Source: Piromyces finnis finn (taxonomy: Eukaryota; Fungi; Neocallimastigomycota). From it: 64,000 bases of DNA. Positions within the stretch are counted from its first letter, which is position 1, and each line of letters begins with the position of its first letter. Below, one piece after another: positions 32,491 to 61,741 of the stretch. Location of the stretch: NCBI GenBank assembly GCA_002104945.1, contig MCFH01000007.1, forward strand, positions 558,001 to 622,000. The letters run 5' to 3'. The notes below the pieces were generated by a model. The model searched no databases, was not told the origin of the DNA, and saw only the letters and a program-made list of their open reading frames with translations. Made by a program: the position numbers and the translations under genes.

Positions 32491-35400
32491 ATGAAGTTTA
32501 AAACAATATTTAAGAAATTAAACCCAAAAAAATATGATAAAAAGTCAGCATTAAATGATAGAATTTCACCAACTTCTCCTTCCCCCGCTTCATCACCAAA
32601 TACAACTTCACCTGTAAATTATAAACCTATTGATTTTCCTCAAAGAAAAACAAGTAGTGTTTTTCAAGGATATCCAAATAATCATTTTAATATTTATGGT
32701 AGAAAATATTCAGCATCAACTATTAGTTCTAGCTCACTTCCTACATCATTTCCCCCAGTACCTTATGTTGTACAACCAACTAAACAAAATGAAGTTACTG
32801 AAATAAACCAAGAATCATTAGATTATTCACAAGTTTCAACAATACCATCACCTTCTCGTAGAGAATCATATATAACGTCAAGACGTTCATCTCAAAAAGT
32901 CATCAATCAAGAAAATATCGATATAAATGAATTTCGTAAAAATTCAATAGGAAAAATACACGGTGCTAACGAATTTTTTGGTGTAAAATCACTTGAAAAT
33001 TCAAATAATACCACTACTCTTATTAATTCAAACGATGAGGTCATGACTTCTTTCCCATCAAAGCGTTCAAATTCTCCAAACGATCATTCCAATACACTTA
33101 ATCCATTGTTAATGGCCCTTCATAAAGATAAAGATGAAAATAGACAAGAAAAAAATGATGAAATTTTGGAATACATTGATAACCAAAATGAAAATCTTGC
33201 TGTAGATGGATATTTTGAAAGTCCTTATCCAGAAACACAAACATATGAAAATAATAATACATTAATGAGGACCATTAGTACAAAACCACATTCACAACCA
33301 CATTCTCCACTTTCACCATCCTTATCTATTTCTTCAAAAAAGAAAACTCATTCAATATTTGGATATTTAAAAAAGAAGGATAAAAAGAAGGATAAGGAAT
33401 TTAAAACAGTATTCAAAAATTTTAGTGTTATGGATACACAATCAATTGAACATGAAGGATTGATTATAGTCGATAATCAAAATAACGCTTTACACAGCCT
33501 TTGGGAACAATGTAATTCTGATCTTATGAAAAGAAATAGTACAATAAATAAAAATTCAGTAGTTCCACCATTATCTCCATTAAGTACTGCAAAATCACTA
33601 AATAATGAAAAAATAGTTCCACCATTATCTCCATTAAGTACTGCAAAATCACTAAATAATGAAAAAATTAGTACAAGTCCTATTAGTACGCCATTAAATT
33701 ATGAAAAAGTATCTAATCCTCATAATTCACAATCAAACTATCACAAAAGTTTAGAAAGAAAAAGTACAAGTCCATTTATTTCACCAATAAATGAAAAAAA
33801 TTGTATGAATATCAGTCCACTCAGTTCACCATCAAATCAAGAAATATTAAATTTAAATTTAATTCAATCTTCATTAAATAACAAAAAAATTAGTTCTAGT
33901 CCACTTCATTCACCAAAAAATGCAAATAGAATAAGTGTTAATTCACGATATATAACTGGTAATAATGAAAGAATAAGTAGTTCTTACAGCTCACCAATAA
34001 ATCAACACATGAATTATGAAAGAATTAGTCCACTTAATTCACCATTAAACCACAAAAGAATTAGTCCACTTAATTCACCTTTGAGTCATGAAAGAATGAG
34101 TTTATTTAGTTTATCTAATGAAAGAGTAAGCCCAAATCTTTATAATTCACCAGGAAATTCTGAAAAAAAGAATAGTCAACTTAATTCATTAAAAGATGAA
34201 TCACAAAACGGAATTAATACTATAAGACCACCACGTTCCCAAAGTATTAATTCTCAACAACGTAACTTTAGTTATTATAATGGTGTTGTTAATCATTCAC
34301 CTTCACCATCAACTCCAAAATATCCAATAAATTCAATCGCTACATCACCAAGATATAAAATTTACATGAAAGAGAGTAATGATAATAAACCAAATGTTGA
34401 TTTACTTGACGATACAATGAATTCTCAACAATGCAATAGTGAAGTCAGTTATTCTCTATCAATGTTAAAATCTCAAGTAAACCCATACGCCACTTCACCA
34501 AGATATAGAGTTTATATGATGAATAACAATAACAATGACGATAATAAAACTAACGCTGATTTTAATACAATTAATAGCATCAATTATAATAATAAATCAA
34601 GAATTAATTCCTTAAAAGGAAAACCTTCTGTTCCTGGTAGAAATGATTCTTTATTTAATAATTTAACTGTAAATATACAAAATAAACCATTGTCTCATCA
34701 ATCATCAACTTCCCATCCATTAGTAGAAATGTCAAAATCCGATTTATTGTTAAATAATAAAAACAATAATAATAGTAGAACAAGTCTTCGTATTAATACC
34801 AATGTTCCTGTAAGAATTGTTCATTCCCCTGTAAATAATAAACCACAAATTTCACCTAATGGTTATTCACTTAAACTTACAACATCACCATTACCACCAC
34901 TAAGAACTAGAAAGTCACCAGCATTAAGTTATACTAAACTATCCTCACCAATTTCACCTACATCTAATGTTTCCAGTGAAGATATATTAAAGGAAAATGT
35001 TGGACAAACTGATATTAGTACAAATAATAATTCTCTTTCAAAGAACAAAAACAACATTTTAAATAGTAATATTGAAAAGGAACAATCAAAAGAGTGTATT
35101 TCATTAAAGGTATCAGAAACAGAAAAAGAAAGCGTTTTAGCCAAATATTTAGAAGAAAGAACAGAAGAAGAAAGTACCATTATTAGCTTTATTGAAAAAC
35201 CATCTGAACCAGAAACTGAAATTATTGAAAAGAAAGAGAAATCATTTAAAAATTTAAAAGAAGATACTACTGAGAAAGAAGAATTGACTAAGGATTCAAA
35301 AGAAAAAACTATTGAGAAAGAAGAATTAACTGAAGACTCAAAAGAAAAAACTATTGAGAAAGAAGAATTAACTGAAGACTCAAAAGTTAAAATTATTGAG

Positions 35401-37038
35401 AATGAATTAATTAATAATTCAAAAGAAAAAATTATTGAAAAGGAAGTGTTATCTGAAAATTCTAAGGAAATAATTGAAGAAAATGTAAATGTTGTAAAAA
35501 CGATAGATGTACAAATTGAAAATAGTTTGTGTGATGAATTAAGTGATGATACTATCAAAACTATTCCTGAACCTTCCATACACTCAATGAACACTGAGAA
35601 CGCCGGGTCTGTTAAGTCAAAGATTTCTACTCTTTCAAAAATATCTAATAATGTAAAAACATCATTAAAAAGTTTTGCAAAGAGTTTAGGTGATAAGGAT
35701 AATATATACGAAAACACTGACATATCAAGAATTTCTAAGAGATCTTCTATCACCAGCTTTACAAGTAATAATTCTGATGATTCTAGCATCTCTGATCTTT
35801 TTTCTACAACAATTACTAAATGTCCAGTAACAGAAGAAGCCCAATGTAGCAATCCAGCAAATCAAGATGAAGCCATTCGATATAACATTGAAAATATGAA
35901 ACCAATAAAAATTATTAAAGAATCAAAGAATAGTAATCTTGGTAAGAGAACATCAGGTATATTAAAAAACAGATCTTCATATTCCATATTGAAAAATAAG
36001 AGTTCTTTTAATAAACTTAAGAATAGAAATAGTGGAAGTATCTATAGTATTTATAGTGGTAGTATTGATGCTTTTCCAATTAAATTAGATGAGATGCCAT
36101 CAAAAAAATTAAAAAATAAAATATCTATAGAAAGTAAAAAAAGTAAAGTAAGTTTTTGTGAAGATAAAAATATTTACAGAAACATTACCATTGATAGAAA
36201 AGATAGTTCAAAATTAAAGCGTATCAGTAATAGTAGTATTATTCCCTACATTGTAGAAAAGTCATTAAATCAAACCACTATCTTGAATGAATCTTCAATA
36301 AAATTTGATAATTATAGCACTACTGAATCCTTTTCTATTTTAAAAGGAAACTTTAATGAAGACGATGAAAGTATGAATGGTAACATCGGCTTTTCAGATA
36401 ATGAATATAATACCGATATTCCAGCTGAACCATACTTTTATCAAATTCACAATATGCCATCTATTTCCTCCATAAACTTTTCATATGATTCAGAAATTGA
36501 TGCTGTCGTTTCTGATCTTACCAAAGAAAAAATTCAAATATTCGATCAACAATTATTGAATAATAAAACCAATTCATCAGCAACTTTTTATCATAATAGT
36601 CATGAAGATACAATGAACAAACGTCAAAGTAGTAATAATACTTATCATAATGAAGATGAAGAAATAAGTAACTTTTTTGAAAGTCAATCTGACAATAGAA
36701 CATCTTTCATTGTAATTGGTAAAGATGATGATGTATTAAAGGAAAATTCATTAGTTGATAAGAACACTAAAGGTAATACTTTATATAATGATAAAACTAA
36801 TAATAAAGATTCATATAGTAATAGATTAAAAAAAAATAATCAATTATTGTCCAATTCTGAATCTTTAAACTCAACTTCTTCTGTAAACGCTATCCGTAAC
36901 TTTCCACAAAATGGAAAGGATTTTAAATATACCCCAAGTTGTTCATCATCAATCATAACCAATATATCTACCAATACCAACAATATCAACAATAGCATAA
37001 ATAGTAACTATAGTATATATTTTAATAATTATTTATAG
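32491..37038 (+). CDS. Large uncharacterised Ser/Asn/Pro/Lys-rich, probably disordered protein (1515 aa ORF; may continue into 37920-40213 by splicing)
   Basis: A 4.5-kb stop-free ATG-initiated ORF is very unlikely by chance in such AT-rich DNA. Internal repeats include VPPLSPLSTAKSLNNEKI x2, ISPLNSPL x2, EKEELT(K/E)DSK x3 and ATSPRY x2. No recognisable domain. Confidence 0.8.
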   Translation: MKFKTIFKKLNPKKYDKKSALNDRISPTSPSPASSPNTTSPVNYKPIDFPQRKTSSVFQGYPNNHFNIYGRKYSASTISSSSLPTSFPPVPYVVQPTKQNEVTEINQESLDYSQVSTIPSPSRRESYITSRRSSQKVINQENIDINEFRKNSIGKIHGANEFFGVKSLENSNNTTTLINSNDEVMTSFPSKRSNSPNDHSNTLNPLLMALHKDKDENRQEKNDEILEYIDNQNENLAVDGYFESPYPETQTYENNNTLMRTISTKPHSQPHSPLSPSLSISSKKKTHSIFGYLKKKDKKKDKEFKTVFKNFSVMDTQSIEHEGLIIVDNQNNALHSLWEQCNSDLMKRNSTINKNSVVPPLSPLSTAKSLNNEKIVPPLSPLSTAKSLNNEKISTSPISTPLNYEKVSNPHNSQSNYHKSLERKSTSPFISPINEKNCMNISPLSSPSNQEILNLNLIQSSLNNKKISSSPLHSPKNANRISVNSRYITGNNERISSSYSSPINQHMNYERISPLNSPLNHKRISPLNSPLSHERMSLFSLSNERVSPNLYNSPGNSEKKNSQLNSLKDESQNGINTIRPPRSQSINSQQRNFSYYNGVVNHSPSPSTPKYPINSIATSPRYKIYMKESNDNKPNVDLLDDTMNSQQCNSEVSYSLSMLKSQVNPYATSPRYRVYMMNNNNNDDNKTNADFNTINSINYNNKSRINSLKGKPSVPGRNDSLFNNLTVNIQNKPLSHQSSTSHPLVEMSKSDLLLNNKNNNNSRTSLRINTNVPVRIVHSPVNNKPQISPNGYSLKLTTSPLPPLRTRKSPALSYTKLSSPISPTSNVSSEDILKENVGQTDISTNNNSLSKNKNNILNSNIEKEQSKECISLKVSETEKESVLAKYLEERTEEESTIISFIEKPSEPETEIIEKKEKSFKNLKEDTTEKEELTKDSKEKTIEKEELTEDSKEKTIEKEELTEDSKVKIIENELINNSKEKIIEKEVLSENSKEIIEENVNVVKTIDVQIENSLCDELSDDTIKTIPEPSIHSMNTENAGSVKSKISTLSKISNNVKTSLKSFAKSLGDKDNIYENTDISRISKRSSITSFTSNNSDDSSISDLFSTTITKCPVTEEAQCSNPANQDEAIRYNIENMKPIKIIKESKNSNLGKRTSGILKNRSSYSILKNKSSFNKLKNRNSGSIYSIYSGSIDAFPIKLDEMPSKKLKNKISIESKKSKVSFCEDKNIYRNITIDRKDSSKLKRISNSSIIPYIVEKSLNQTTILNESSIKFDNYSTTESFSILKGNFNEDDESMNGNIGFSDNEYNTDIPAEPYFYQIHNMPSISSINFSYDSEIDAVVSDLTKEKIQIFDQQLLNNKTNSSATFYHNSHEDTMNKRQSSNNTYHNEDEEISNFFESQSDNRTSFIVIGKDDDVLKENSLVDKNTKGNTLYNDKTNNKDSYSNRLKKNNQLLSNSESLNSTSSVNAIRNFPQNGKDFKYTPSCSSSIITNISTNTNNINNSINSNYSIYFNNYL

Positions 37039-37885: not shown

Positions 37886-40213
37886 TTGTCAAAAATAAAT
37901 ATAAATAAAAAAAAAAAAGATGATAAAAAGGAAACAAAACCATTATATAGTGATCATATATCAATTAAAACAAGATATTCTGAACCGTGTGAAAAACTAG
38001 ATATTAACATAAATGACAGTATTACCATGGTTAAGAAAGATAAATCTTTTAAGTCTACAGGTGACATAGATTCTGTAAATAATATTGATATAGATTTATT
38101 GGATTTAAAATTGGATTTAAATTTAAATTTTGATTTAAAGGATGAAATTTGCAATTCTATTAATTTAGAAAAAAATGAAGAAATTAAGAATAATTATGAA
38201 TTTAGTAGCCTTGAGATTGAAGATAGTCCAAATGAATTAAAAGACTTAAATATCAATAAAAAAGAAAGCAAAAATCTTTCTTCCCCACTTAGTCCTACCA
38301 ATATTAATACTAATAATTCAATTAAAGCTAAAAAAAATAATACAGATGATTTAAATTTTAGTAGCATCAAGAAATTAATTCAAAATAAAAAAAATAGTGA
38401 TGAATCTAGTTCTTCAAGTTCCCAATCAGATTCAAAATCAAATGAAGATGGTGAAAAATCTAATCATATAAAGTTTAATAATAAAGAAATAAGAAAGATC
38501 AAGAATCAAAAAAGAGAAAGCAATGACTATAATAAAAATGAAATTAACAATGAAAATCAAGAAACCGTAAAAAGATCTTTCTCAAAGCAATCAAGAAGTA
38601 GTAAACTTGAATTTCCATTCAGAAGGTCTTCATCAAAACAATCTAAAGATAATAAAAATGACTTTCCGTCAAGAAATTCTTCCGTTGTTACCACCGCATC
38701 AAAAACAAAAAATGATAATGTATTAAGAAGATCGTCTACTAAAAGAAGTGTTAATGATTATTCTAAAACAGTTCAAGATTGTATTCAGCAATTAGCACCT
38801 GCCTTTAAGAATTTTGATTCGCAATTTTCACCAAGTAAAGAAACCCAAAAGAGTGAATGTCAATTCGAAAAGAAAATTTCATACGAGAACAAGAAAGAAT
38901 CTCATTTATTCACTGATATCAAAAAATCAACAGTATTGGGTAAAGATGACATTTTTAAATCTAAAAAAACAAATGAAATATCAAAAATTAAATTTACCCC
39001 CATGAAAATAGCATTACCATCAAAAACTGACAATAATGCCTCCGAAGAACCTCTTACCATTGTTGTTGGAAATCAAGAAGTTACCCATTATAATTATAAA
39101 AGCTTTTCAGCTAAATCCAATTCTGTTGCAGTTGTTTCCGGTCAATATTCTACTCATAAAGATTTAAATAAAAGTACCCATAAATCTTTTGTTGAAGGTA
39201 CTACCTTGGTTAATAGTGATAGATATAGTAAAAATTTTCAAAAGTCCAAGTTAGTAGGTTGTTCAACATTAGTCAACAGTGAGGAAAACCCAAGTTTCTA
39301 TCCATCAAAAATAATTCAATCAAGCAAAATCATAAAAGAGAAAAGGAAGCCAGCATCCTTATTACCAAGAAATGAATCACTAAAAATTTTAAAGGATCAA
39401 TATCCAAAGGAATCCATTAATGCCGATGAAATTGTTGCAGCAAAATGTGTTGAAATTAATGGAAAAAAGAGTATTAAAAGTGAACGTATTAATACCAATG
39501 AAATTAAAGGCAAAACACCTCAACATAAGAAATATCAATCTTCACCAGTTAAATCTTCTAAACCAGCTCTGTGTGATGATTCAACAAATAAAACAAAGTC
39601 TGTAGATATTAATACTATGACTTTTTCAAGAAGAACTTCATCTCTAATTAATCCAACCAGTGTTCCATCACCATTACTCTATAACAAGAATATTCTAAGA
39701 GTAAAAAGAGAAGGTCTCCCACACCGTAAAAGAATTTCACATCGAAGTATAACCAAGAAAACCAGTCAAAGTTCCAGTTTAAAGATTAGTTCCATATTAA
39801 ATGAAGAACAAATAATGGCCAAAAAATCATGGGAAACCAAAGATGATGAATCTATCAATACAAATAGACATGCTAGTCATAGAACAAGATCTAGATCTTT
39901 CGGACCAGGTGATTTATCAAAGTATTATATGGTTGCCTTAGCCAATGTAATGTTTAATAATGGAAATTCAAAAGCTCTGTTTGAATCACCTTCTTATAAT
40001 AAATCTAATCAAGAAATTTTAAAAGAATTAAATGACAATGGTGTTATTTCTTTCCGTAGAAATAGTGTTGATCAATATGCTAATAATGATATCACATCAC
40101 CAATTTTTGAAAAAATTAATGGTTTAACCAATTTAGAATTTATTGAACTATATTTGGATATTGTTCAACGAAACCTTTCTATTGATGAGTTATTACAACG
40201 AATTTCAAAGTAA
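37886..40213 (+). CDS. Uncharacterised Lys/Ser/Asn-rich coding region (775 aa ORF, TTG start; probably a downstream exon starting at 37920)
   Basis: 2.3-kb stop-free frame with no ATG at its 5' end. An A-run+AG acceptor-like site lies at 37918-37919. The C-terminus looks helical (LEFIELYLDIVQRNLSIDELLQRISK). No recognisable domain. Confidence 0.7.
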   Translation: MSKININKKKKDDKKETKPLYSDHISIKTRYSEPCEKLDININDSITMVKKDKSFKSTGDIDSVNNIDIDLLDLKLDLNLNFDLKDEICNSINLEKNEEIKNNYEFSSLEIEDSPNELKDLNINKKESKNLSSPLSPTNINTNNSIKAKKNNTDDLNFSSIKKLIQNKKNSDESSSSSSQSDSKSNEDGEKSNHIKFNNKEIRKIKNQKRESNDYNKNEINNENQETVKRSFSKQSRSSKLEFPFRRSSSKQSKDNKNDFPSRNSSVVTTASKTKNDNVLRRSSTKRSVNDYSKTVQDCIQQLAPAFKNFDSQFSPSKETQKSECQFEKKISYENKKESHLFTDIKKSTVLGKDDIFKSKKTNEISKIKFTPMKIALPSKTDNNASEEPLTIVVGNQEVTHYNYKSFSAKSNSVAVVSGQYSTHKDLNKSTHKSFVEGTTLVNSDRYSKNFQKSKLVGCSTLVNSEENPSFYPSKIIQSSKIIKEKRKPASLLPRNESLKILKDQYPKESINADEIVAAKCVEINGKKSIKSERINTNEIKGKTPQHKKYQSSPVKSSKPALCDDSTNKTKSVDINTMTFSRRTSSLINPTSVPSPLLYNKNILRVKREGLPHRKRISHRSITKKTSQSSSLKISSILNEEQIMAKKSWETKDDESINTNRHASHRTRSRSFGPGDLSKYYMVALANVMFNNGNSKALFESPSYNKSNQEILKELNDNGVISFRRNSVDQYANNDITSPIFEKINGLTNLEFIELYLDIVQRNLSIDELLQRISK

Positions 40214-41527
40214 ATTGCAAAAAAAAAAAAAAAAAATCCATATAATAAATTCATCTATCTACAAAAATATTTATATGTTTATTTCATATAGGTAAATATA
40301 TAGATTTTATTAAAAAAAAAAAAAAAAGGAAAAAATTAATATTGTAAAATTAAAGTACATATTTTAATAACAATAAAAATATATATAATATATTATTATA
40401 GTATATTTTTTTTTAAAAAAAAGAAAAAGAAAAAACATGAATTTATTTTAATTTATTGACTTCTTTTTATTGTTAATCTACTTATAAGTTTAAATGATAT
40501 AAAAAGAGATTTTATCTTTTTATATCTATTTTTGTTATTATGTTGATATTCTTAAATTTATATTTTTTATAATTAAACACTGTTTTTTGTACAATTCATA
40601 GATAATTCCAAAAAAAAAAAAAAAAAAAAAAAAAAATACTTCTCACAATTAATAAATAATAATAAAATAAATTGAAAAGATAAAATTTTATTAAAAATCA
40701 AATTATCCAGTTTTAAAATAATGGAAGAATTTTTAAATAAATCTATTAATGATTTATGTTTTTTTAATGGGAATTTATTTTAATATAAATTATTATTTTT
40801 AATCTTTTTAGTTTGCCAACCTTTACTATCGTAAGTGAAGATTCATAATGAAAAGATCCACATATCTCTGCACTACAACACTTTAATGAATATTCTTTAT
40901 TCTTTCTACAGAATTCATAAAACATCCGACTACATTAAGACTTTTTAATAGATAAAGAAAAAATATAGTACGTTTTGTATTATAGATATTATCATAACAT
41001 ACAACATTTAGATTCCACATATCTATACAGATATTATTATTTAAACCTTTGAAAAGCATTTTATTATCCGTTTTATTGTCAATAGAAATATAAATAACTT
41101 CACATTGTTATTAAATTCTATTTATTTAGATTTAAATGGATAAAGAATTAAAATATATCTATGAGTCTTAACTTTTTTATTTTTTATCTGGAAGCTCAAT
41201 AAAATATTTAATATAATTAATCATTATTCACTCATACAAACACATCGTTTTTATAACAAAATAGTCTGTAATATCCACAAAATAATGTAGAAATAATTAA
41301 TCATAAAACTCTTTAAATTTCATGATTAGAAAAATAGATGAGGTTTTATATCAAATATAGTTCATGATTGGGGCGTTAGAATTTTAATGTCTTTTATTAT
41401 ACGCCACTATATAATAAAAATCATATCTTGGTATTTATCCATTCTTTTACCAAAAACCGGGAAAAAAAAATATCATGAAGATTCCCTTGACGAATCAAAA
41501 ATGATATTAAAGAACAATGATTAAAGG

Positions 41528-41559
<32 letters not shown>

Positions 41560-41875
41560 GTAAATAACAACTACTTTATATAATAAGATAATCGGTCTAT
41601 TTTCAAAGTATCATAATTTTTTTTAATTCCACTAAATTAAGAATTTATATATTTTATAAATATGATGTATTTTTATTTAATATCTTTTTAAATTATTATA
41701 AAAAAGAAAAAAAAAAAAAAATAGTTAAATTATTAATCTTGAAAATAATTAAAATAATTGATAATTATATTTTATAAATATCTTAAAAGTAAATTCTTTT
41801 AATAAAGATAGATTTTTAATTTCATAATTAAAATATTAAATATCGTTATAGATCAAAATAAAAAGAAAATGATAT

Positions 41876-41876
<1 letters not shown>

Positions 41877-41954
<78 letters not shown>
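41877..41954. repeat. (AAT)n microsatellite, ~26 units
   Basis: Pure trinucleotide run downstream of the CBM18 gene. Confidence 0.95.
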
Positions 41955-42102
41955 GATTTACTTTTAATTATACAGTTAATTCAATACAACATTAAATTAA
42001 ATTATTAAATAACTTTATAAAGTATTCTATATAGTAATAGTATGTTATTACGATAATAATTGATGATAATGAAATATTATTATTAATTTAGTTATCGATT
42101 AA

Positions 42103-45100
42103 TTAAATAGAGTTTTCATGAATTAATTGTCCAATTTTATAACCATAATCTTCTTGGTAATTATTAGCATTAGCAAATTTAATATTATAATATAAATGAG
42201 GATCGAATAAATTGAAGAAAACATCATAGGTTTCATTGAAAAATTTAGAAAATAAACTTTCTAAATTAACCGATAGAACTATACTTTTATTTGAAACCCA
42301 ATCTCTATTGTCGGTATCAATATCTATGATGAAAACATCATTGGTGACGGTTGATTTAAATAAAAGCTCTGACTGGAAGTATTTATAGGCTGGAGCAAAA
42401 CCAATATTTTCTAGAGATATATTTATTGTATTATTTTCAAAGAAACTATCTCTTAAAACATATCTATAACCTAAATGATAATTCATATATTCTTCAGCTG
42501 TTACTTTATTCCAATTTGGTTGATAAATTTGTTTGCTAAAAGTAATATTCCATCGGTTAAAAATTAAGCGATCATATTCATCATTGTAATAAGATAGATG
42601 AATATTCTCGCTATGGTTTTCACAAACATAAAAGTTGTTATAATTATCTGGACTAGCAATGACCTTTTTAATATCTGATAATTCATAAATTTCCTCATAC
42701 TCATCATTTTTTATATTGGAAAGAACTTCTCCACCATTTGGTACCCTTAGACATAACTCTTTTTGAAAATCAACTTCATCTTTTCTTGGCATTTTTACAT
42801 AAAGTTTTTCTGTATCATCATTAAAGCAGGTAACAGCCACTTTACTATAAGTACCAGTATCTGTTTCGCTATAAAATAATCCATCATTATACAAACTTAG
42901 TCTTTTAATTAGTTCTTCATATTCTTTGCTACTTTTCTTTTTAATTTCATTAGTGATAGCTCTGTGATGACAAGGGGTTCTCACTGCTAAAAATATAGAA
43001 TTATCAAACTTTTCATTAATGGCTTCCATAATTTTAGTATTTGAAATTAAGGATGTAGCATGTTTAGTACTATGCATTTCACCCCATCGACCAACAAAAA
43101 CTCCTTGATAAATATATATAACATCTTTATATTTATTAACTATACTTGAAAGTTGATCAATATGTGTTAAAATAGTATCAATATTTTCTGGTTCTTTATC
43201 TGTTGGACTGTATCTATAGCAATTACTTCCCTCAACCAAAGTAAATTTTCCATTTTCTCTTTTTGATAATTTAGAGGTTTGATTTGTTACTTTAATATCA
43301 TTTTTATCATTATTGCTAGCCATAATATTGCTTTTACTTAATACACTTTTCATATATTCAATATCTTTATTTGTTATATATTCTTCACCATTATCTAATT
43401 CTTTTTTTACAAATAATCTTTCTTCTAACACAGATGATGATGTTGATGATGATGATGATGATGACTTTGAACTTCCGCTATCATAATAAAATCTTAAAAT
43501 AATTTGGGTTGTTGGATCAATCTCTTCCTTTCTTTTTCTATATTCATTTAATAAATAATCTAAAAATTCTAGTGCTTTTGTGGAAATAGGTGAGTCATAA
43601 TATTCTGATAATCTAACACCTAAATATTGCAATCCTGTTTTACTTTTTCTTACCATACTAAAAGTATAGATAAAATTGCAATCAGTATCAGCACTGTCTG
43701 TTAAATCTATGGTGAAAGAACCATGGAAACAACCTCGATATGGATTTTGTAATTCATTAAAAGATTCTTTCATGACTTCAGGTTTATATTTTGTATTTTC
43801 TATACATGTGCCATAATCTAATTGACAATTGTTTGAGAGAGCGCAATAAGAAAATGTTTTTCCACAAAATCCATCTTTACTACAACAATGACCTGAAGGG
43901 CATTTACCATATCCCGGTCCACATTTACAGTTTCCAAATTCAGATTGGCAATTATTGGAAATTAAACAATATGCATCAGTTGTACCACAATATCCTTTTG
44001 CACTGCAACAATGATTAGAGTTACAAATACCATTGTCTCCACTACATTTACATGTTCCAAATTCTGGTTGACATCCTTTAGCTGAGGAACAGTAACTTGT
44101 TGTCTTTCCACAATATCCTTTTGCACTACAACATTGATTAGTACCACAACTACCAAAAGTACTACCACATCTACAATCACCATATTCAGATTGGCAACCA
44201 TTAGAAGTAGAGCAATATTCTTCTGTTTTTCCACAGAATCCATCCTTACCACAACATTGACCTGAAGGGCATTTACCATATTCAGGTCCACATTTACAGT
44301 TTCCAAATTCAGATTGACAATTATTAGAAATTAAACAATATGCAGCAGTTGTACCACAATATCCTTTTGCACTGCAACATTGATTAGTACCACAACTACC
44401 AAAAGTACTACCACATCTACAATCACCATATTCAGATTGGCAACCATTAGAAGTAGAACAATATTCTTCTGTTTTTCCACAGAATCCATCTTTACTACAA
44501 CATTGACCTGAAGGGCATTTACCATATTCAGGTCCACATTTACAGTTTCCAAATTCAGATTGACAGTTATTAGATGCTGAGCAGTATGCAGCAGTTGCAC
44601 CACAATATCCTTTTGCACTGCAACAATGATTAGAGTTACAAATACCATTGTCTCCACTACATTTACATGTTCCAAATTCTGGTTGACATCCTTTAGCTGA
44701 GGAACAGTAACTTGTTGTCTTTCCACAATATCCTTTTGCACTACAACATTGATTAGTACCACAACTACCAAAAGTACTACCACATCTACAATCACCATAT
44801 TCAGATTGGCAACCATTAGAAGTAGAGCAATATTCTTCTGTTTTTCCACAGAATCCATCCTTACCACAACATTGACCTGAAGGGCATTTACCATATTCAG
44901 GTCCACATTTACAGTTTCCAAATTCAGATTGACAATTATTAGAAATTAAACAATATGCAGCAGTTGTACCACAATATCCTTTTGCACTGCAACATTGATT
45001 AGTACCACAACTACCAAAAGTACTACCACATCTACAATCACCATATTCAGATTGGCAACCATTAGAAGTAGAACAATATTCTTCTGTTTTTCCACAGAAT

Positions 45101-45462
45101 CCATCCTTACCACAACATTGACCTGAGGGGCATTTACCATATCCCGGCCCACATTTACATTTTCCAAATTCAGATTGACAGTTATTAGATGCTGAGCAGT
45201 ATGCAGCAGTTGCACCACAATATCCTTTTGCACTGCAACAATGATTAGAGTTACAAATACCATTGTCTCCACTACATTTACATGTTCCAAATTCTGGTTG
45301 ACATCCTTTAGCTGAGGAACAGTAACTTGTTGTCTTTCCACAATATCCTTTTGCGCTACAACATTGACCTGTAGGGCAATTACCATACCCTTCTCCGCAT
45401 TTTAAAGCATGAGTAATTGAAATAAATAATATAAATATACATATATATATTGTTACTTTCAT
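42103..45462 (-). CDS. Secreted protein: signal peptide + 13 hevein/CBM18 chitin-binding modules + DUF4874/DUF4832-like (putative glycoside-hydrolase-fold) domain; intronless
   Basis: Hydrophobic leader MKVTIYICIFILFISITHA. Thirteen 41-aa 8-Cys modules of the form CG..yG.C...qCCS..GyCG.T..YC.....CQ.efG.C. C-terminal motifs NPYRG, IILRFYYD, QGVFVGRWGEMH, AVRTP, LYNDG...DTGTY, NGGE, HLGYRYVL and LENIGFAP were recognised from bacterial DUF4874/DUF4832 proteins (motif recall, not a search). Confidence 0.85.
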   Translation of the reverse strand: MKVTIYICIFILFISITHALKCGEGYGNCPTGQCCSAKGYCGKTTSYCSSAKGCQPEFGTCKCSGDNGICNSNHCCSAKGYCGATAAYCSASNNCQSEFGKCKCGPGYGKCPSGQCCGKDGFCGKTEEYCSTSNGCQSEYGDCRCGSTFGSCGTNQCCSAKGYCGTTAAYCLISNNCQSEFGNCKCGPEYGKCPSGQCCGKDGFCGKTEEYCSTSNGCQSEYGDCRCGSTFGSCGTNQCCSAKGYCGKTTSYCSSAKGCQPEFGTCKCSGDNGICNSNHCCSAKGYCGATAAYCSASNNCQSEFGNCKCGPEYGKCPSGQCCSKDGFCGKTEEYCSTSNGCQSEYGDCRCGSTFGSCGTNQCCSAKGYCGTTAAYCLISNNCQSEFGNCKCGPEYGKCPSGQCCGKDGFCGKTEEYCSTSNGCQSEYGDCRCGSTFGSCGTNQCCSAKGYCGKTTSYCSSAKGCQPEFGTCKCSGDNGICNSNHCCSAKGYCGTTDAYCLISNNCQSEFGNCKCGPGYGKCPSGHCCSKDGFCGKTFSYCALSNNCQLDYGTCIENTKYKPEVMKESFNELQNPYRGCFHGSFTIDLTDSADTDCNFIYTFSMVRKSKTGLQYLGVRLSEYYDSPISTKALEFLDYLLNEYRKRKEEIDPTTQIILRFYYDSGSSKSSSSSSSTSSSVLEERLFVKKELDNGEEYITNKDIEYMKSVLSKSNIMASNNDKNDIKVTNQTSKLSKRENGKFTLVEGSNCYRYSPTDKEPENIDTILTHIDQLSSIVNKYKDVIYIYQGVFVGRWGEMHSTKHATSLISNTKIMEAINEKFDNSIFLAVRTPCHHRAITNEIKKKSSKEYEELIKRLSLYNDGLFYSETDTGTYSKVAVTCFNDDTEKLYVKMPRKDEVDFQKELCLRVPNGGEVLSNIKNDEYEEIYELSDIKKVIASPDNYNNFYVCENHSENIHLSYYNDEYDRLIFNRWNITFSKQIYQPNWNKVTAEEYMNYHLGYRYVLRDSFFENNTINISLENIGFAPAYKYFQSELLFKSTVTNDVFIIDIDTDNRDWVSNKSIVLSVNLESLFSKFFNETYDVFFNLFDPHLYYNIKFANANNYQEDYGYKIGQLIHENSI
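43804..45402 (-). repeat. Coding tandem array of 13 x 123-bp CBM18 units with a 615-bp (5-unit) higher-order period
   Basis: The marker AATACCATTGTCTCCACTAC recurs at 44026, 44641 and 45256, a spacing of 615 = 5 x 123. Confidence 0.9.
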
Positions 45463-56899: not shown

Positions 56900-59712
56900 C
56901 TAGATGTGTGGCATGATCATTTCGAAAACCTTGCATCAGATCCAAGTGGTGTAAGTCTTGATTTGGAGCATTGGTATGAAGAACCAACGAATAAACGTTT
57001 TTCACTTCCTATGCTTGATGAGTGGGATATCAACCAAGATATTAGTATTGATGAAGTCAAGTCAGCTATCCTCACTACTCCAAATTATAAAGCATCAGGT
57101 CCGGATGGTATTCCAATTGAATTTTACAAAGCATTAGTTCCATCAAGTAATGATTCTAATAATGCTACAGATAATAATTCTTCTGGTAATACTACTTCAG
57201 ATAATGATGCTCATGGTTTAAATTTTATTCTTAAATTATTCAACCGTATTTGGGATGGAGATTTCCCCAACTCATGGAATGAATCCAGTATTGTTTCTAT
57301 TCCTAAGAAGGGAGATTTGACAGATTGTGATAACTATCGAGGTATATCACTTATCAATAATGGTATTAAGTTGATTTCCAAAATTGTCACCACTAGAATC
57401 TCAGAATATGGTTTAAAGAATAATTTCATTAGACCTGAACAATTTGGTTTTCGAAAAAAGGAAGAAAGTATTAGTCTTTTCATTTCAATCCAAGAAATAT
57501 GCCGTAGACGTCAATTAGATAATAAAGAGACATATTTGGCCTTTTTAGATCTCAGGAAAGCATACGATTCAGTCCCAATCGGTAATATTCTCCATAAATT
57601 AGATTGTTTAGGAATCCGAGGTAAGAGTCTACAATTTATCAAAAATTTATATTTAACATCTAAGGCTAATGTCAAATTAGATGGACAATTCTCGAAATCT
57701 TTTGATGTGAAGAAAGGAGTCCGTCAAGGTTGCCCACTTTCGCCTATTCTTTTTAATCTCTTTATTAATGATATATTTAAAGAGTGTGAAGATCTCGGAG
57801 TCAGTTTAGGTGACACTCGATGCTGTGGTGGACTTTTTGCAGATGATATAGTTATTTGTGCTCCAACAAGAGGATGCTTAAAAAAGATGCTTAGAAGAGT
57901 TAATGAATGGGCCTTGTATAATGAAATGGAATTTGGTATCCAGAAATGTTCAACGATGGTGATTCGTCCTGAATCAATAGAAAATCAGAACAAGAGAGAT
58001 CCAACATTTTACTTAGCAGGACAACCCATTCCAACTACTGACTGCTACACTTATCTTGGTGTTCCATTTGATAAGAATCTGTCCCTTAAACCAGTAATTA
58101 AAGCTCTTAATAACAAGGTTTTGAAAGGGCTTTTCTCAGTCAGTAAATTCTTAAGAAATCCTAATATTCCTATTCCTTTCAAAAAACTAGTACTTAACTC
58201 TCAAGTGATTAGCAGAGTTTCATACTTTGCACCATTACTTGGATCCAACAAAGCTAGGTCTAGGATTGCTCAGAAGCATGTTAACAAAGGAATACGATGG
58301 GTTGCCGGAGTTCATAAAGCTGTATCGTTTATATCTTTATACTCTATTTCAAAAGATTTGAATATTCCTCCATTGTCAGCCAAATGTGCGTTAGCTCAGG
58401 TTAGATGTTTTAACAAATGGAAAAACTCAAATTGTATTATCTCACACCTTGTCAATTACATTCCTAAATTTAGAAAATACACGTGGTGCAAATCAAGTAG
58501 GACACTTGATAAAAAACTAAAGAAACATGGAGATGTTAAAGCAGTTAAAAACTTTTATTGGAAAGATCTCAAAGGGAATTCAATCAAAGCGCAATATTAT
58601 GATGATAATAAATTTATTGAAACTAAAGATTTTATTAAATTATGTTATGAATACCCAGAGTTTGCCTATGGCTTCTACTGGCTATTGAAAGCAAGAAGCG
58701 GATACAAGTTGGATGCTAGAGTTGCCAAAGCTGCTAAATTTGTTGATCCAATTTGTCCTAACTACTGTCCATGTTGCAAGTGTGGTGTTCAAAGTATTAA
58801 ACATTGGTTATTAGATTGTCCAACATTTAGAGATATCCGTATTAAACATTATGATTCCATAGTCCAGCTATTAAATTTTTTCAGTCAACGTAATTCCAAT
58901 AGTCCTATCAATAATAATGAAATTGATAATGTCAGTAGAGATAGCAATAACAGTAATAGTAATAGTAACAATAATAATAATAACAATAGTAATAATAACA
59001 ATAGTAGTAATAGTAATAATAGAAATAGTAATAATAACAATAGTAGTAATAGAAATAATAATATTAATAATGATAGCAATAGTGAAGATAATAATTCTAA
59101 TTTAGATAGTAATTTAGTTAATGATAGTAATAGTTCTAATAATCCGGTGAATATTAATGTGTATGATTATTCTAGTGTGTGCAGTAAAATATTTAAATTC
59201 CTTCTTGGGGGAAGAAGTTTTAACAATATTAATTACAATTCAAGGGAATGGAAAGAACTTTGTAAGCGTCAGATTCAATCTGGTACTAATGAAGGAGCAC
59301 CATTCTTGACGGTAACCGCGGAACTTCTAACCAAAATCATGCCTTTTGCTATTGGCCAGCAATGGTCAATGTTCAAAAGGTTTGAAGCAACATCCAAGAG
59401 CGTCAATGCTGAAGAAACAGTAAGACAGGCCAGGAGGGCCAGCGCAACCAATGGAGATCATAATTTTGTCCCATGATAAAATTTTGATCTTTGGCTCGGT
59501 GTCCCATTGGAAGTCAAATACAATTATTATACTTTAGTATGATAGTGGCTTTCTTACTTTAATTAAAATTACTAGAATACATTATACCCAGTTTTTATTC
59601 ATTTGTGTTTATTTAAACATATTTTTTTTATTTTTATTTTTATTTTTAATTTTTTATTACATGTATTATAATTTTAATTAAATTAATAATAAAGTTTAAA
59701 ATATTTGATGCC

Positions 59713-59749
<37 letters not shown>
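56900..59749 (+). mobile_element. Non-LTR retrotransposon (LINE) copy 1, 5'-truncated, RT + CCHC, A34 tail
   Basis: The frame is open from 56900 to TGA at 59476. RT motifs: KASGPDGIP, SIPKKGDLTDCDNYRGISL, QFGFR, FLDLRKAYDSV, GVRQGCPLSPILFNLFIND, LFADD, YTYLGV. Zinc knuckle CPCCKC...HWLLDC. A ~240-nt 3' UTR is followed by poly(A) at 59716-59749. Confidence 0.92.
56906..59476 (+). CDS. LINE reverse transcriptase (N-terminally truncated, intact frame, 856 aa)
   Basis: See RT motifs above. The GTG start is only the truncation point, not a true initiation codon. Confidence 0.85.
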   Translation: MWHDHFENLASDPSGVSLDLEHWYEEPTNKRFSLPMLDEWDINQDISIDEVKSAILTTPNYKASGPDGIPIEFYKALVPSSNDSNNATDNNSSGNTTSDNDAHGLNFILKLFNRIWDGDFPNSWNESSIVSIPKKGDLTDCDNYRGISLINNGIKLISKIVTTRISEYGLKNNFIRPEQFGFRKKEESISLFISIQEICRRRQLDNKETYLAFLDLRKAYDSVPIGNILHKLDCLGIRGKSLQFIKNLYLTSKANVKLDGQFSKSFDVKKGVRQGCPLSPILFNLFINDIFKECEDLGVSLGDTRCCGGLFADDIVICAPTRGCLKKMLRRVNEWALYNEMEFGIQKCSTMVIRPESIENQNKRDPTFYLAGQPIPTTDCYTYLGVPFDKNLSLKPVIKALNNKVLKGLFSVSKFLRNPNIPIPFKKLVLNSQVISRVSYFAPLLGSNKARSRIAQKHVNKGIRWVAGVHKAVSFISLYSISKDLNIPPLSAKCALAQVRCFNKWKNSNCIISHLVNYIPKFRKYTWCKSSRTLDKKLKKHGDVKAVKNFYWKDLKGNSIKAQYYDDNKFIETKDFIKLCYEYPEFAYGFYWLLKARSGYKLDARVAKAAKFVDPICPNYCPCCKCGVQSIKHWLLDCPTFRDIRIKHYDSIVQLLNFFSQRNSNSPINNNEIDNVSRDSNNSNSNSNNNNNNNSNNNNSSNSNNRNSNNNNSSNRNNNINNDSNSEDNNSNLDSNLVNDSNSSNNPVNINVYDYSSVCSKIFKFLLGGRSFNNINYNSREWKELCKRQIQSGTNEGAPFLTVTAELLTKIMPFAIGQQWSMFKRFEATSKSVNAEETVRQARRASATNGDHNFVP

Positions 59750-59751
<2 letters not shown>

Positions 59752-61741
59752 ACAATTCTCGAAATCTTTTGATGTGAAGAAAGGAGTCCGTCAAGGTTGC
59801 CCTCTTTCTCCTATTCTCTTTAATCTCTTTATTAATGATATATTTAGAGAGTGCGAAGATCTAGGAGTCAGTTTAGGTGACACTCGATGCTGTGGTGGAC
59901 TTTTTGCAGATGATATAGTTATTTGTGCTCCAACAAGAGGATGCTTAAAAAAGATGCTTAGAAGAGTTAATGAATGGGCATTGTATAATGAAATGGAATT
60001 TGGTATCCAGAAATGTTCAACGATGGTGATTCGTCCTGAATCAATAGAAAATCAGAACAAGAGAGATCCAACATTTTACTTAGCAGGACAACCCATTCCA
60101 ACTACTGATTGCTATACTTATCTTGGTGTTCCATTTGATAAGAATCTGTCCCTTAAACCAGTAATTAAAGCTCTTAATAACAAGGTTTTGAAAGGGCTTT
60201 TCTCAGTCAGTAAATTCTTAAGAAATCCTAATATTCCTATTCCTTTCAAAAAACTAGTACTTAACTCACAAGTGATTAGCAGAGTTTCATACTTTGCACC
60301 ATTACTTGGATCCAACAAAGCTAGGTCTAGGATTGCTCAGAAGCATGTTAACAAAGGAATACGATGGGTTGCCGGAGTTCATAAAGCTGTATCGTTTATA
60401 TCTTTATACTCTATTTCAAAAGATTTGAATATTCCTCCATTGTCAGCCAAATGTGCGTTAGCTCAGGTTAGATGTTTTAACAAATGGAAAAACTCAAATT
60501 GTATTATCTCACACCTTGTCAATTACATTCCTAAATTTAGAAAATACACGTGGTGCAAATCAAGTAGGACACTTGATAAAAAATTAAAGAAACATGGAGA
60601 TGTTAAAGCAGTTAAAAACTTTTATTGGAAAGATCTCAAAGGGAATTCAATCAAAGCGCAATATTATGATGATAATAAATTTATTGAAACTAAAGATTTT
60701 ATTAAATTATGTTATGAGTACCCAGAGTTTGCCTATGGCTTCTACTGGCTATTGAAAGCAAGAAGCGGATACAAGTTGGATGCTAGAGTTGCCAAAGCTG
60801 CCAAATTTGTTGATCCAGTTTGTCCTAACTACTGTCCATGTTGCAAGTGTGGAGATCAAAGTATTAAACATTGGTTATTAGATTGTCCAACATTTAGAGA
60901 TATCCGTATTAAACATTATGATTCTATAGTCCATCTATTAAATTTTTTCAGTCAACGTAATTCCAATAGTCCTATCAATAATAATGAAAATGTTAATATC
61001 AGCAGAGATAGCAATAACAGTAATAGTAATAGTAATAATATTAATAATAACAATAGTAATAATAACAATAGTAGTAATAGAAATAATAATATTAGTAATG
61101 ATAGCAATAGTGATGATAATAATTCTAATTTAGATAGTAATTTAGTTGATGATAGTAATAGTTCTAATAATCCGGTGAATATTAATGTGTATGATTATTC
61201 TAGTGTGTGCAGTAAAATATTTAAATTCCTTCTTGGGGGAAGAAGTTTTAACAATATTAATTACAATTCAAGGGAATGGAAAGAACTTTGTAAGCGTCAG
61301 ATTCAATCTGGTACTAATGAAGGAACACCATTCTTGACGGTAACCGCGGAACTTCTAACCAAAATCATGCCTTTTGCTATTGGCCAGCAATGGTCAATGT
61401 TCAAAAGGTTTGAAGCAACATCCAAGAGCGTCAATGCTGAAGAAACAGTAAGACAGGCCAGGAGGGCCAGCGCAACCAATGGAGATCATAATTTTGTCCC
61501 ATGATAAAATTTTGATCTTTGGCTCGGTGTCCCATTGGAAGTCAAATACAATTATTATACTTTAGTATGATAGTGGCTTTGTTACTTTAATTAAAATTAC
61601 TAGAATACATTATACCCAATTTTTATTCATTTGTGTTTATTTAAACATATTTTTTTTATTTTTATTTTTATTTTTTTATTTTTTATTACATGTATTATAA
61701 TTTTAATTAAATTAATAATAAAGTTTAAAATATTTGATGAC

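Follow-up and report, generated by a model that had tools for sequence, protein, structure and literature searches.

The closest described relatives of the protein considered here are SIR_1591 and the other DUF4874/DUF4832 hydrolases of Gram-positive pel loci, which carry the same pair of Pfam domains and are extracellular, as is predicted for the fungal protein (PMC12345266; bioRxiv 10.1101/768473). Encoded in the pel operon of Streptococcus intermedius and composed of a TIM barrel and a DUF4832 region, SIR_1591 disperses Pel aggregates, as does PelA_H, evidence that concerns aggregate dispersal only and does not extend to the bond cleaved (PMC12345266). In streptococci and clostridia, reading frames for DUF4832 proteins directly adjoin pel genes (bioRxiv 10.1101/768473). 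When compared by description, SIR_1591 and the fungal protein both combine a TIM barrel with a β-sandwich that borrows an N-terminal strand (PMC12345266). The bacterial pel-locus proteins are about 470 residues long, begin with a membrane anchor or signal, and lack any carbohydrate-binding module (CBM), whereas the fungal protein is eukaryotic and has loop insertions of 88 and about 22 residues and 13 CBM18 modules. We infer the kinship of the fungal domain to SIR_1591 from the shared Pfam domains and the pel-locus context; nearly everything recovered by a profile search for the named members from streptococci was an unnamed metagenomic protein.

Other systems resemble the fungal protein in proposed role, in fold class, or in overall plan. 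Sph3 (GH135), Ega3 (GH114), and PelA_H (GH166) are alike in the proposed role, the extracellular trimming of cationic α-1,4-linked GalNAc/GalN exopolysaccharide by (β/α)8-type enzymes, but they have no sequence relationship to the fungal domain, use other catalytic motifs, and lack CBM18 arrays; Ega3 is anchored to the membrane rather than to chitin. The glycoside hydrolases of clan GH-A (GH5, GH26, GH39, GH42) are only 6-12% identical to the fungal domain, their solved structures give no sequence-level match, their NEP motif is missing from it, and barrels that are not glycoside hydrolases score equally well in structural comparison. Fungal wall enzymes bearing CBM18 and the CBM18 fusions of gut fungi follow the same plan of signal peptide, tandem hevein modules, and secreted functional domain. 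What sets the present protein apart from these fusions is its partner, a bacterial-type DUF4874/DUF4832 barrel, and a count of 13 modules that exceeds the relatives seen, such as the eight of one paralogue (C199).

The gene lies in a 64,000-nucleotide stretch of Piromyces finnis DNA, referred to here as the window, and is a single uninterrupted open reading frame from ATG to stop that encodes 1119 residues (Table 1). An identical 1119-residue sequence is already held in NCBI, UniRef, and EukProt, so its public model, too, has no intron, in agreement with the uninterrupted gene described in an earlier note on this DNA. Contigs from three studies, whose RNA origin is not confirmed, span 42038/42062..43900 without a gap and end 41-65 nt beyond the stop codon. 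The gene is intact and probably transcribed, with a GC3 of 12-15%. The "intron-dense neighbourhood" of the earlier note is not what is found, as the closest neighbours are themselves long uninterrupted reading frames of 1515 and 775 residues and nearly all paralogues of the gene are single long frames.

Table 1. Features of the CBM18-DUF4874/DUF4832 gene, in window coordinates
Feature	Position	Strand	Basis
Coding sequence, complete and intronless, 1119 aa + stop	42103..45462	-	ORF translation, identical database entry, contig coverage
Signal peptide, residues 1-19 (MKVTIYICIFILFISITHA, then LKCG)	45406..45462	-	Hydrophobicity; cleavage site judged by eye
13 CBM18/hevein modules, 41-aa period, 8 Cys each	43801..45402	-	Pfam and regular expression
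Five-module block, modules 2-6, first copy of 615-nt internal duplication	44665..45279	-	Copy comparison
Five-module block, modules 7-11, second copy of 615-nt internal duplication	44050..44664	-	Copy comparison
(β/α)8 barrel, protein residues ~573-1000; DUF4874 and first half of DUF4832	42463..43746	-	
Fungus-specific 88-aa insertion, β3-α3 loop, Ser-rich, partly low-confidence	43204..43467	-	Alignment and pLDDT
GRWGEMH; invariant Glu E795 just past β4, candidate acid/base	43072..43092	-	Alignment, AF2/DSSP, translation
NGGE; invariant Glu E912 at β7 end, candidate nucleophile	42727..42738	-	Alignment, AF2/DSSP, translation
Second fungus-specific insertion, ~22 aa, directly after NGGE	42646..42711	-	Alignment
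C-terminal β-sandwich (second half of DUF4832), completed by the domain's first strand	42106..42462	-	DSSP strands 447-562 and strand 2-7

The N-terminal half of the protein has the features of a secreted, chitin-directed polypeptide. The N-terminal 19-mer is the sole strongly hydrophobic one in the protein, and the junction at the end of the signal peptide (...ISITHAL[KR]CG) is shared with the C199 paralogue. A scan of hydrophobic 19-mers over all 1119 residues gave no transmembrane segment or GPI-like tail, and Pfam gave no CBM10 fungal dockerin at E<=1, consistent with the absence of a dockerin remarked upon previously. Chitin_bind_1 is matched in 13 stretches (E 5.3e-73, 241.4 bits in total), all of which fit the eight-cysteine hevein scaffold C-x(4-8)-C-x(4-5)-CC-x5-C-x6-C-x5-C-x6-C. 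The signal peptide, the 13 hevein modules, and the domain of about 560 residues reported earlier are all recovered. Among the ligand positions of hevein, an aromatic residue (Tyr or Phe) is kept at W23 and Y30 in every module and S19 in nine of the 13, while W21 is replaced by Lys or Asp throughout. Chitin binding by these modules is plausible from their sequences, as is a role of the array as a tether to the fungal wall. Part of the array has arisen by internal duplication, the two 615-nt copies differing at only 7 nt, every one of them within columns 120-175.

The remaining 565 residues contain DUF4874 (PF16173; 1.4e-30, 106.5 bits against a cut-off of 30.1, in two stretches) followed by DUF4832 (PF16116; 6.2e-29, 101.7 bits, cut-off 29.2), both above their gathering scores and in the order typical of the family, as the earlier assignment had it. 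In an AF2 model (pLDDT 87) they form one (β/α)8 barrel and a β-sandwich, in line with the TIM-barrel, glycosidase-like fold that had been proposed. An ESM Atlas model of a bacterial DUF4832 protein superimposes on the fungal domain with TM scores of 0.72/0.86 and an rmsd of 2.4 Å over 426 residues; as modelled, the fungal domain shares the fold of bacterial DUF4832 members. Searches of the PDB with the domain and with a 30-sequence profile gave no real sequence match, the single hit, RSV F2, being spurious, and NCBIfam has no match for the protein.

Over 30 fungal and bacterial sequences, 19 alignment columns are invariant, among them E203, H213, E241, R274, D306, E342, and E358 (fragment numbering), and the family motifs NPYxG, RFxYD, EP, GxWGEMH, AVRTP, NDG, VPNGGE, and HLGYRY are all present. 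The two glutamates singled out in the earlier note, those of GRWGEMH and NGGE, whose motifs translate as described, correspond to E241 and E358; according to DSSP on the AF2 model, E241 comes directly after strand 235-238 and E358 falls within strand 355-359, at the ends of β4 and β7. E203 and E342 are two further invariant glutamates.

Superimposed on this conserved core are the two insertions specific to the fungal proteins. No bacterial homologue has the larger one, nor does P0019, and the model has a pLDDT <50 at fragment residues 112-132 and 159-182. The possibility that this segment is a retained intron was ruled out, as it is in frame and free of stop codons, is kept in the public models of orthologues, and is covered contiguously by the contigs of the three studies.

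A search of bacterial species genomes gave 433 relatives of the domain, of which the best 80 are almost all from Lachnospiraceae. In the phylogeny, all 25 gut-fungal rows form one clade (SH-aLRT 100) that is nested inside a 71-row Lachnospiraceae clade (SH-aLRT 98), together with one of two bacterial paralogue clades, a placement that supports horizontal transfer from bacteria, as had been suspected. The closest bacterial homologues are 30-36% identical to the fungal domain, and the branch leading to the fungal clade is long, at 0.99 substitutions per site; this branch length and the two new insertions indicate that specificity may have changed. A homologue assigned to a "Methanosphaera stadtmanae MAG" was rejected as an archaeal occurrence, since its 3.5-kb contig has 27% GC and pairs within the fungal clade with P0007 of Piromyces sp. 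E2; it is probably a misbinned fungal contig.

Nor is the gene a lone oddity; it is one member of a gut-fungal family with multiple copies, which public proteomes already include. About 7-8 paralogues occur in P. finnis itself, the identical architecture is found in other Piromyces proteomes, and the heads of the paralogues are interchangeable, being either CBM18 or a ricin-type lectin, a fold that commonly binds Gal/GalNAc.

The genomic context of the nearest bacterial relatives links the family to Pel exopolysaccharide. Their DUF4874/DUF4832 genes adjoin those for PelG, PelF (DUF3492 and GT4), and DUF2194; among the 56 such loci of at least 12 kb, to which these counts are confined, PelG is found in 50, PelF in 48, and DUF2194 in 46. 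With the closest bacterial kin in pel loci, and with SIR_1591 known to disperse Pel aggregates (PMC12345266), the earlier description of DUF4874/DUF4832 proteins as being of unknown function is outdated. No pel genes flank the fungal gene, and neither PelG nor DUF2194 was found in the P. finnis genome; the fungal gene therefore descends from a pel-locus group but now stands outside such a locus. Co-transfer with CotH, which neighbours DUF4832 in some Gram-positive pel loci, was considered and is unsupported by 80 Lachnospiraceae loci, where tblastn with fungal CotH and fungal GH114 queries gave no match within 8 kb on either side, a weak query that a distant CotH may escape.

Elsewhere in its genome, P. 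finnis has genes that recall those for Pel and galactosaminogalactan (GAG). These include three giant reading frames with DUF3492 and GT4 (PelF/Gtb3-like synthases), Agd3-like deacetylases (Agd3_CE match, 2e-79), and at least 25 GH114 matches, all at least 125 kb from the CBM18-DUF4832 gene and not clustered with it. Sph3 (PF12138) was not detected in P. finnis, which is weak evidence because the control search with PF12138 also matched nowhere. The abundance of GH114 in anaerobic fungi is an acknowledged puzzle, its substrate not known since it was first noticed (PMC6054980).

The reading that we favour, with a probability of roughly one half, is that the protein is held at the wall and there hydrolyses a Pel/GAG-like GalNAc/GalN polymer. 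A gut-fungal ancestor took the gene once from a bacterium akin to the gut and rumen Lachnospiraceae that encode the nearest homologues within Pel exopolysaccharide loci; full amelioration to AT-rich codons, the two loop insertions, multiplication, and fusion to CBM18 or ricin-type heads followed. After removal of the signal peptide, the hevein-type modules would hold the protein with high avidity on the fungus's own chitin wall, and the C-terminal 565 residues form a single catalytic-type unit made up of the barrel, which Pfam splits into DUF4874 and DUF4832, and the β-sandwich. The polymer would then be hydrolysed at the hyphal surface by means of the Glu after β4 and the Glu at the end of β7. 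Judged from gene content and homology, the target would most likely be the fungus's own matrix and less likely the Pel matrix of neighbouring bacteria. Because PelF/Gtb3-like, Agd3-like, and numerous GH114 genes are present in P. finnis whereas Sph3 was not detected, the DUF4832 family could be the GalNAc-side hydrolase. The architecture, the class of fold, the conserved residues, the bacterial origin, and the pel-locus setting of the closest relatives are demonstrated by the analysis, and enzymatic activity, substrate, chitin binding, and localisation are deduced. More tentatively, gut fungi may possess an entire GAG/Pel-type system, with a Gtb3/PelF-like synthase, an Agd3-like deacetylase, and expanded GH114, in which a Lachnospiraceae pel-locus enzyme, shown on the chitin wall via CBM18 arrays or aimed by ricin-type heads, takes the part of the absent GalNAc hydrolase that Sph3 or PelA_H plays elsewhere.

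Whose polymer is attacked bears on a rather unlikely alternative, that of an anti-biofilm or competitive enzyme. Here the target of the wall-tethered hydrolase would be the Pel-type matrix made by Lachnospiraceae and further Gram-positive bacteria of the gut that colonise the fungus or the plant particles it shares with them, and the effect would be to keep the hyphae free of growth or to release sugars. The domain derives from these same bacteria, in which pel loci are common, foreign aggregates are dispersed by externally added SIR_1591 and PelA_H (PMC12345266), and Ega3-type enzymes are reported to break up microbial biofilms (PMC8778642). However, the fungus owns synthase-like and deacetylase-like genes for such a polymer, and a tether to its own chitin would confine the reach of the enzyme to the immediate surface.

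A second alternative, about as improbable as the first, is that specificity shifted after transfer to a β-linked polymer, either a plant cell-wall polysaccharide or the chitin, chitosan, or glucan of the wall targeted by CBM18. A CBM is usually directed at the substrate of the enzyme that carries it, and the long fungal stem branch would accommodate such a change. The β4/β7 Glu pair is a hallmark of clan GH-A, whose known members cleave β-glycosides, and together with the top structural matches (GH5, GH26, GH10, GH39) it points to the β-glycanases of that clan; it runs counter to the Pel reading, Pel being α-1,4-linked. Also counter to that reading is a DUF4874-DUF4832-dockerin_I protein from the cellulosome proteome of a Ruminococcus, a hint that some members may act on plant substrates (PMC7480376). 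One Atlas cluster bears the name "Type 1 dockerin," and a further one joins DUF4832 with Glyco_hydro_42. Against a β-linked target, the closest bacterial kin are pel-locus rather than plant-degradation genes, and every family-invariant residue is retained.

Least probable by far is a non-catalytic wall protein, whose CBM18 array shields chitin or whose barrel serves only as a lectin: CBM18-only transcripts and transcripts with CBMs but no catalytic domain are common in anaerobic fungi (PMC6054980), but the seven invariant polar residues, four of them Glu, are kept in every fungal paralogue examined, and a conserved 565-residue barrel would be costly as an inert appendage. The wall-protective effector role suggested in the earlier note is likewise disfavoured because all invariant catalytic-type residues are kept.

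In the guts of herbivores, anaerobic fungi have a key part in breaking down fibre, and the gene ties them to Pel/GAG from a second and independent direction. A hydrolase family with bacterial members in pel loci entered the gut fungi by one transfer from rumen and gut Clostridia, and was then multiplied and given wall-anchoring or lectin heads. Even if the proposed activity is false, the gene remains a clear case of horizontal transfer followed by domain shuffling. If the proposed activity is true, a eukaryotic branch would be added to a glycoside-hydrolase family that, to our knowledge, is not yet classified in CAZy, together with a candidate Pel-dispersing enzyme. Should the captured-hydrolase system hold as well, it would represent a chimeric eukaryote-bacterial form of matrix remodelling and help to explain the long-standing GH114 puzzle. 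An active hydrolase would also be a practical tool, obtainable by expression, for probing the hyphae of gut fungi for a GalNAc/GalN matrix, which would matter when the fungi attach to plant particles or to their bacterial and methanogenic partners.

The gene under study is real and intact, and the earlier note described it correctly. One open reading frame runs unbroken from its ATG through 1119 codons to a stop codon, and in it Pfam finds Chitin_bind_1 in 13 stretches (E 5.3e-73), DUF4874 in two stretches (E 1.4e-30) and DUF4832 (E 6.2e-29), in agreement with the 13 hevein modules and DUF4874/DUF4832 domain first read there. The GRWGEMH and NGGE motifs singled out in that reading both translate, and, as it stated, no fungal dockerin is found: the protein has no Pfam CBM10 match even at E<=1. 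The proposed signal peptide corresponds to the hydrophobic N-terminal MKVTIYICIFILFISITHA (cleavage site placed by eye), the sole strongly hydrophobic segment of the protein. As hydrophobicity of the sequence reveals neither an internal transmembrane segment nor a hydrophobic C-terminal tail, the protein should be secreted, with no membrane or GPI anchor. The picture of an intron-dense neighborhood is not borne out, however, as the adjoining ORFs of 1515 and 775 residues are uninterrupted and the paralogues are mostly single frames too. LINE-type reverse-transcriptase ORFs lie beyond these two neighbors.

Features of the gene, its surroundings and the Piromyces finnis gene set (bare numbers are window coordinates; C200 is the contig carrying the window, C146, C178 and C199 are other contigs, and L numbers are loci with their own numbering)
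Feature	Location	Strand	Basis or note
Gene under study	42103-45462	-	ORF and Pfam
GRWGEMH motif	43072-43092	-	translation
NGGE motif	42727-42738	-	translation
ORF, 1515 aa, adjoins gene	32491-37038	+	uninterrupted; no Pfam match at E<=0.001
ORF, 775 aa, adjoins gene	37886-40213	+	uninterrupted; no Pfam match at E<=0.001
Two RVT_1 ORFs, LINE-type element	56906-61504	+	Pfam (8.5e-36, 4.4e-16)
Giant ORF, 2678 aa, PelF-type DUF3492 + GT4 end	C200:1203191-1211224 (L093:191-8224)	+	Pfam
Giant ORF, 2785 aa, DUF3492 match	C200:1153080-1161437 (L094:80-8437)	+	genome scan only
Giant ORF, 1154 aa, PelF-type DUF3492 + GT4 end	C146 (L095:3617-7078)	-	Pfam
Agd3-type CE18 deacetylase gene pair	C200:746501-756000 (L098:1174-2631; L098:7532-8728)	-; +	Agd3_CE
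GH114 tandem array (example)	C178:783351-815117		dense array
CBM18-type paralogue	C199 (L002:421-3201)		one 927-aa ORF, 8 modules

The gene is not categorically new. Its exact 1119-residue sequence is already deposited in NCBI, UniRef and EukProt, and the CBM18-DUF4874-DUF4832 architecture is deposited from Piromyces sp. E2, labeled only “carbohydrate-binding module family 18 protein”, and occurs in rumen metagenomes. CBM18 fusions and Clostridial gene transfer are well known in gut fungi, and the DUF4874/DUF4832 family has one characterized member. In the P. finnis assembly (56,455,805 bases, 232 contigs), about 7-8 members of this family are found, nearly all paralogues being single long frames; a second CBM18-type member has 8 modules and 68% identity, the remainder have differing N-terminal parts, and some members in other gut fungi bear ricin-type β-trefoil lectin heads. 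With the C-terminal domain constant and the N-terminal parts varied, the gene is one of a gut-fungal family with interchangeable carbohydrate-binding heads. The public model BCR36DRAFT_407124 (762 residues) is identical to the C199 paralogue across the entire catalytic domain, has another N terminus and omits part of the CBM18 array; its repeat region is likely mis-modeled.

A pattern search resolves the hevein array (residues 21-554) into 13 modules of eight cysteines each, repeating every 41 residues exactly; this count rests on the assembly and an identical public model, as short-read contigs cannot confirm copy number. Modules 2-6 and 7-11 form a duplicated 615-nt block with only 7 differences, all inside 55 nt; the array has therefore expanded only very recently, through unequal exchange or gene conversion. 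Of the hevein ligand residues, all 13 modules retain the position-23 aromatic residue (Tyr or Phe) and Tyr30, and 9 retain Ser19, whereas Trp21 is replaced by Lys or Asp in every one; chitin binding by the array is plausible.

No PDB relative of the C-terminal 565 residues is found by single sequence or by 30-sequence profile. A confident AlphaFold2 model from the 30-sequence alignment (pLDDT 87, pTM 0.88) predicts a (β/α)8 barrel at domain residues ~19-446 (protein numbering adds 554), followed by a β-sandwich at 447-565 that the first strand of the domain completes. DUF4874 spans β1-β4 and DUF4832 spans β6-β8 plus the sandwich, so the two Pfam “domains” divide one barrel. Seven polar residues are invariant among the 30 fungal and bacterial sequences (E203, H213, E241, R274, D306, E342 and E358). 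By DSSP of the model, E241 (GRWGEMH) directly follows β4 and E358 (NGGE) ends β7, a “4/7” arrangement consistent with the guess of a catalytic pair. Relative to bacteria, the fungal clade has a ~22-residue insertion after NGGE and an 88-residue Ser-rich insertion in the β3-α3 loop; P0019, a CBM18 member from Piromyces sp. E2, has neither.

Within a compared stretch of 2601 nt beside the repeat array, contigs of four runs from three studies match the coding sequence at 100% identity. They cover 42038/42062 to 43900 without gaps, ending 41-65 nt past the stop codon, and are essentially absent from the AT-rich flank at 41300-42037. The libraries carry no RNA label on record; with total contig sizes of 20-45 Mb, below genome size, they look like transcript assemblies. 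The gene is thus probably expressed, and transcript-like contigs across the insertion argue against its splicing.

When bacteria and archaea were scanned with one genome for each species, 433 relatives were found, the best 80 of which come almost entirely from gut and rumen Lachnospiraceae (Acetatifactor, Dorea, Roseburia, Eubacterium, Fusicatenibacter, Schaedlerella and others) at 30-36% identity. The earlier note's proposal of horizontal acquisition is supported by a maximum-likelihood tree (114 sequences, 463 columns; IQ-TREE quick search, LG+C20) whose bacterial rows are those nearest the fungal query, thinned of bacterial rows >60% and fungal rows >97% identical. In it, all 25 gut-fungal rows group in a single clade on a long stem (SH-aLRT 100; 0.99 substitutions per site), nested in a 71-row clade (SH-aLRT 98) with one of two paralogous Lachnospiraceae clades; the second (SH-aLRT 100) and the outgroups fall outside. 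DUF4832 proteins also exist in animals (PMC13350694); on the eukaryotic side the tree covers gut-fungal sequences only. In the ESM Atlas, every one of the nearest clusters is bacterial, and the gene's GC3 (12-15%) is fungus-typical, against 36-51% GC in donors. Together these lines support one old bacterium-to-fungus transfer with expansion afterwards. Clostridiales are the main donors to gut fungi in published surveys (bioRxiv 10.1101/487215), and the main texts of such surveys do not mention the DUF4874/DUF4832 family. SUTP01000129.1, a 3516-bp contig assigned to a “Methanosphaera stadtmanae” MAG, encodes a ricin-head member that groups with Piromyces sp. E2 within the fungal clade; given this position and its 27% GC, the contig almost certainly comes from a gut fungus, not an archaeon, and was placed in the wrong bin.

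Genomic setting was examined for the nearest bacterial relatives of the fungal domain. At three loci viewed in detail, the homologue gene adjoins PelG, PelF (DUF3492+GT4) and a DUF2194 protein, with other glycosyltransferases and often another DUF4874/DUF4832 paralogue. Within ±8 kb of the homologue, PelG occurs at 50, PelF at 48 and the DUF2194 protein at 46 of the 56 nearest-relative loci with >=12 kb available. Likewise, a preprint (10.1101/768473) notes DUF4832 ORFs directly adjoining pelDEA_DA FG in streptococci and clostridia. The premise that such proteins are of unknown function is outdated: recombinant SIR_1591, a TIM-barrel plus DUF4832 protein of the Streptococcus intermedius pel operon, equals PelA_H in its efficiency at dispersing Pel-dependent aggregates, the Pel concerned is GalNAc-rich, and a matching barrel and strand-completed β-sandwich are described for it (PMC12345266). 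On the locus counts above, pel-locus hydrolases are the ancestors of the fungal domain; SIR_1591 is likened to it by shared Pfam domains and pel-locus context. Two paralogues occur at 59 of the 80 best Lachnospiraceae loci, divergent and side by side, and they form two separate clades; gut fungi inherited just one type. In one ESM Atlas cluster of the family, labeled 54% Uroviricota, 39% of members carry Por_Secre_tail; such proteins may be polysaccharide depolymerases encoded by phages or prophages.

P. finnis itself has genes of the Pel/GAG (galactosaminogalactan) type. Three giant DUF3492 ORFs, two on the window's own contig, are candidate Gtb3/PelF-like exopolysaccharide synthases, and an Agd3-type deacetylase pair (Agd3_CE, 2e-79 and 2.5e-45) lies 125 kb from the window on that contig. 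GH114 (Ega3-type endo-α-1,4-polygalactosaminidase) has at least 25 matches; its abundance in anaerobic fungi is unexplained, and a galactosaminogalactan-like polymer has been speculated (PMC6054980). None of these synthase-, deacetylase- or GH114-type genes clusters with the gene under study. PelG and DUF2194 are not found in the P. finnis genome, nor is Sph3 (PF12138), a weak result as the control was also silent. CotH has at least 124 matches genome-wide.

The favored reading, at a probability of about 0.5, is a secreted, chitin-tethered hydrolase: the CBM18 array would hold the protein with high avidity on the fungus's own chitin, and the barrel would act at the surface of the hyphae on a GalNAc/GalN polymer resembling Pel or GAG, in all likelihood that of the fungus's own matrix. 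The heads of some paralogues would suit such a ligand, as ricin-type folds commonly bind Gal/GalNAc. It is rather unlikely that the same enzyme is directed at bacterial Pel biofilm. Equally doubtful is a specificity shifted toward a β-linked plant or wall polymer, suggested by a catalytic layout like that of GH-A and by bacterial relatives with dockerins in a Ruminococcus cellulosome proteome (PMC7480376). The main tension is that a β4/β7 Glu pair is typical of β-linkage enzymes whereas Pel is α-1,4-linked. That the product is a non-catalytic wall protein is very improbable.

The gene is thus a eukaryotic, putatively chitin-tethered descendant of bacterial pel-locus hydrolases, formerly a “DUF of unknown function”. 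Both the pel-locus origin of the gut-fungal family and its fit with the GAG/Pel-type gene set of P. finnis appear unreported within the literature searched. The GalNAc-side role played elsewhere by Sph3 or PelA_H could, in this fungus, fall to a wall-tethered hydrolase.
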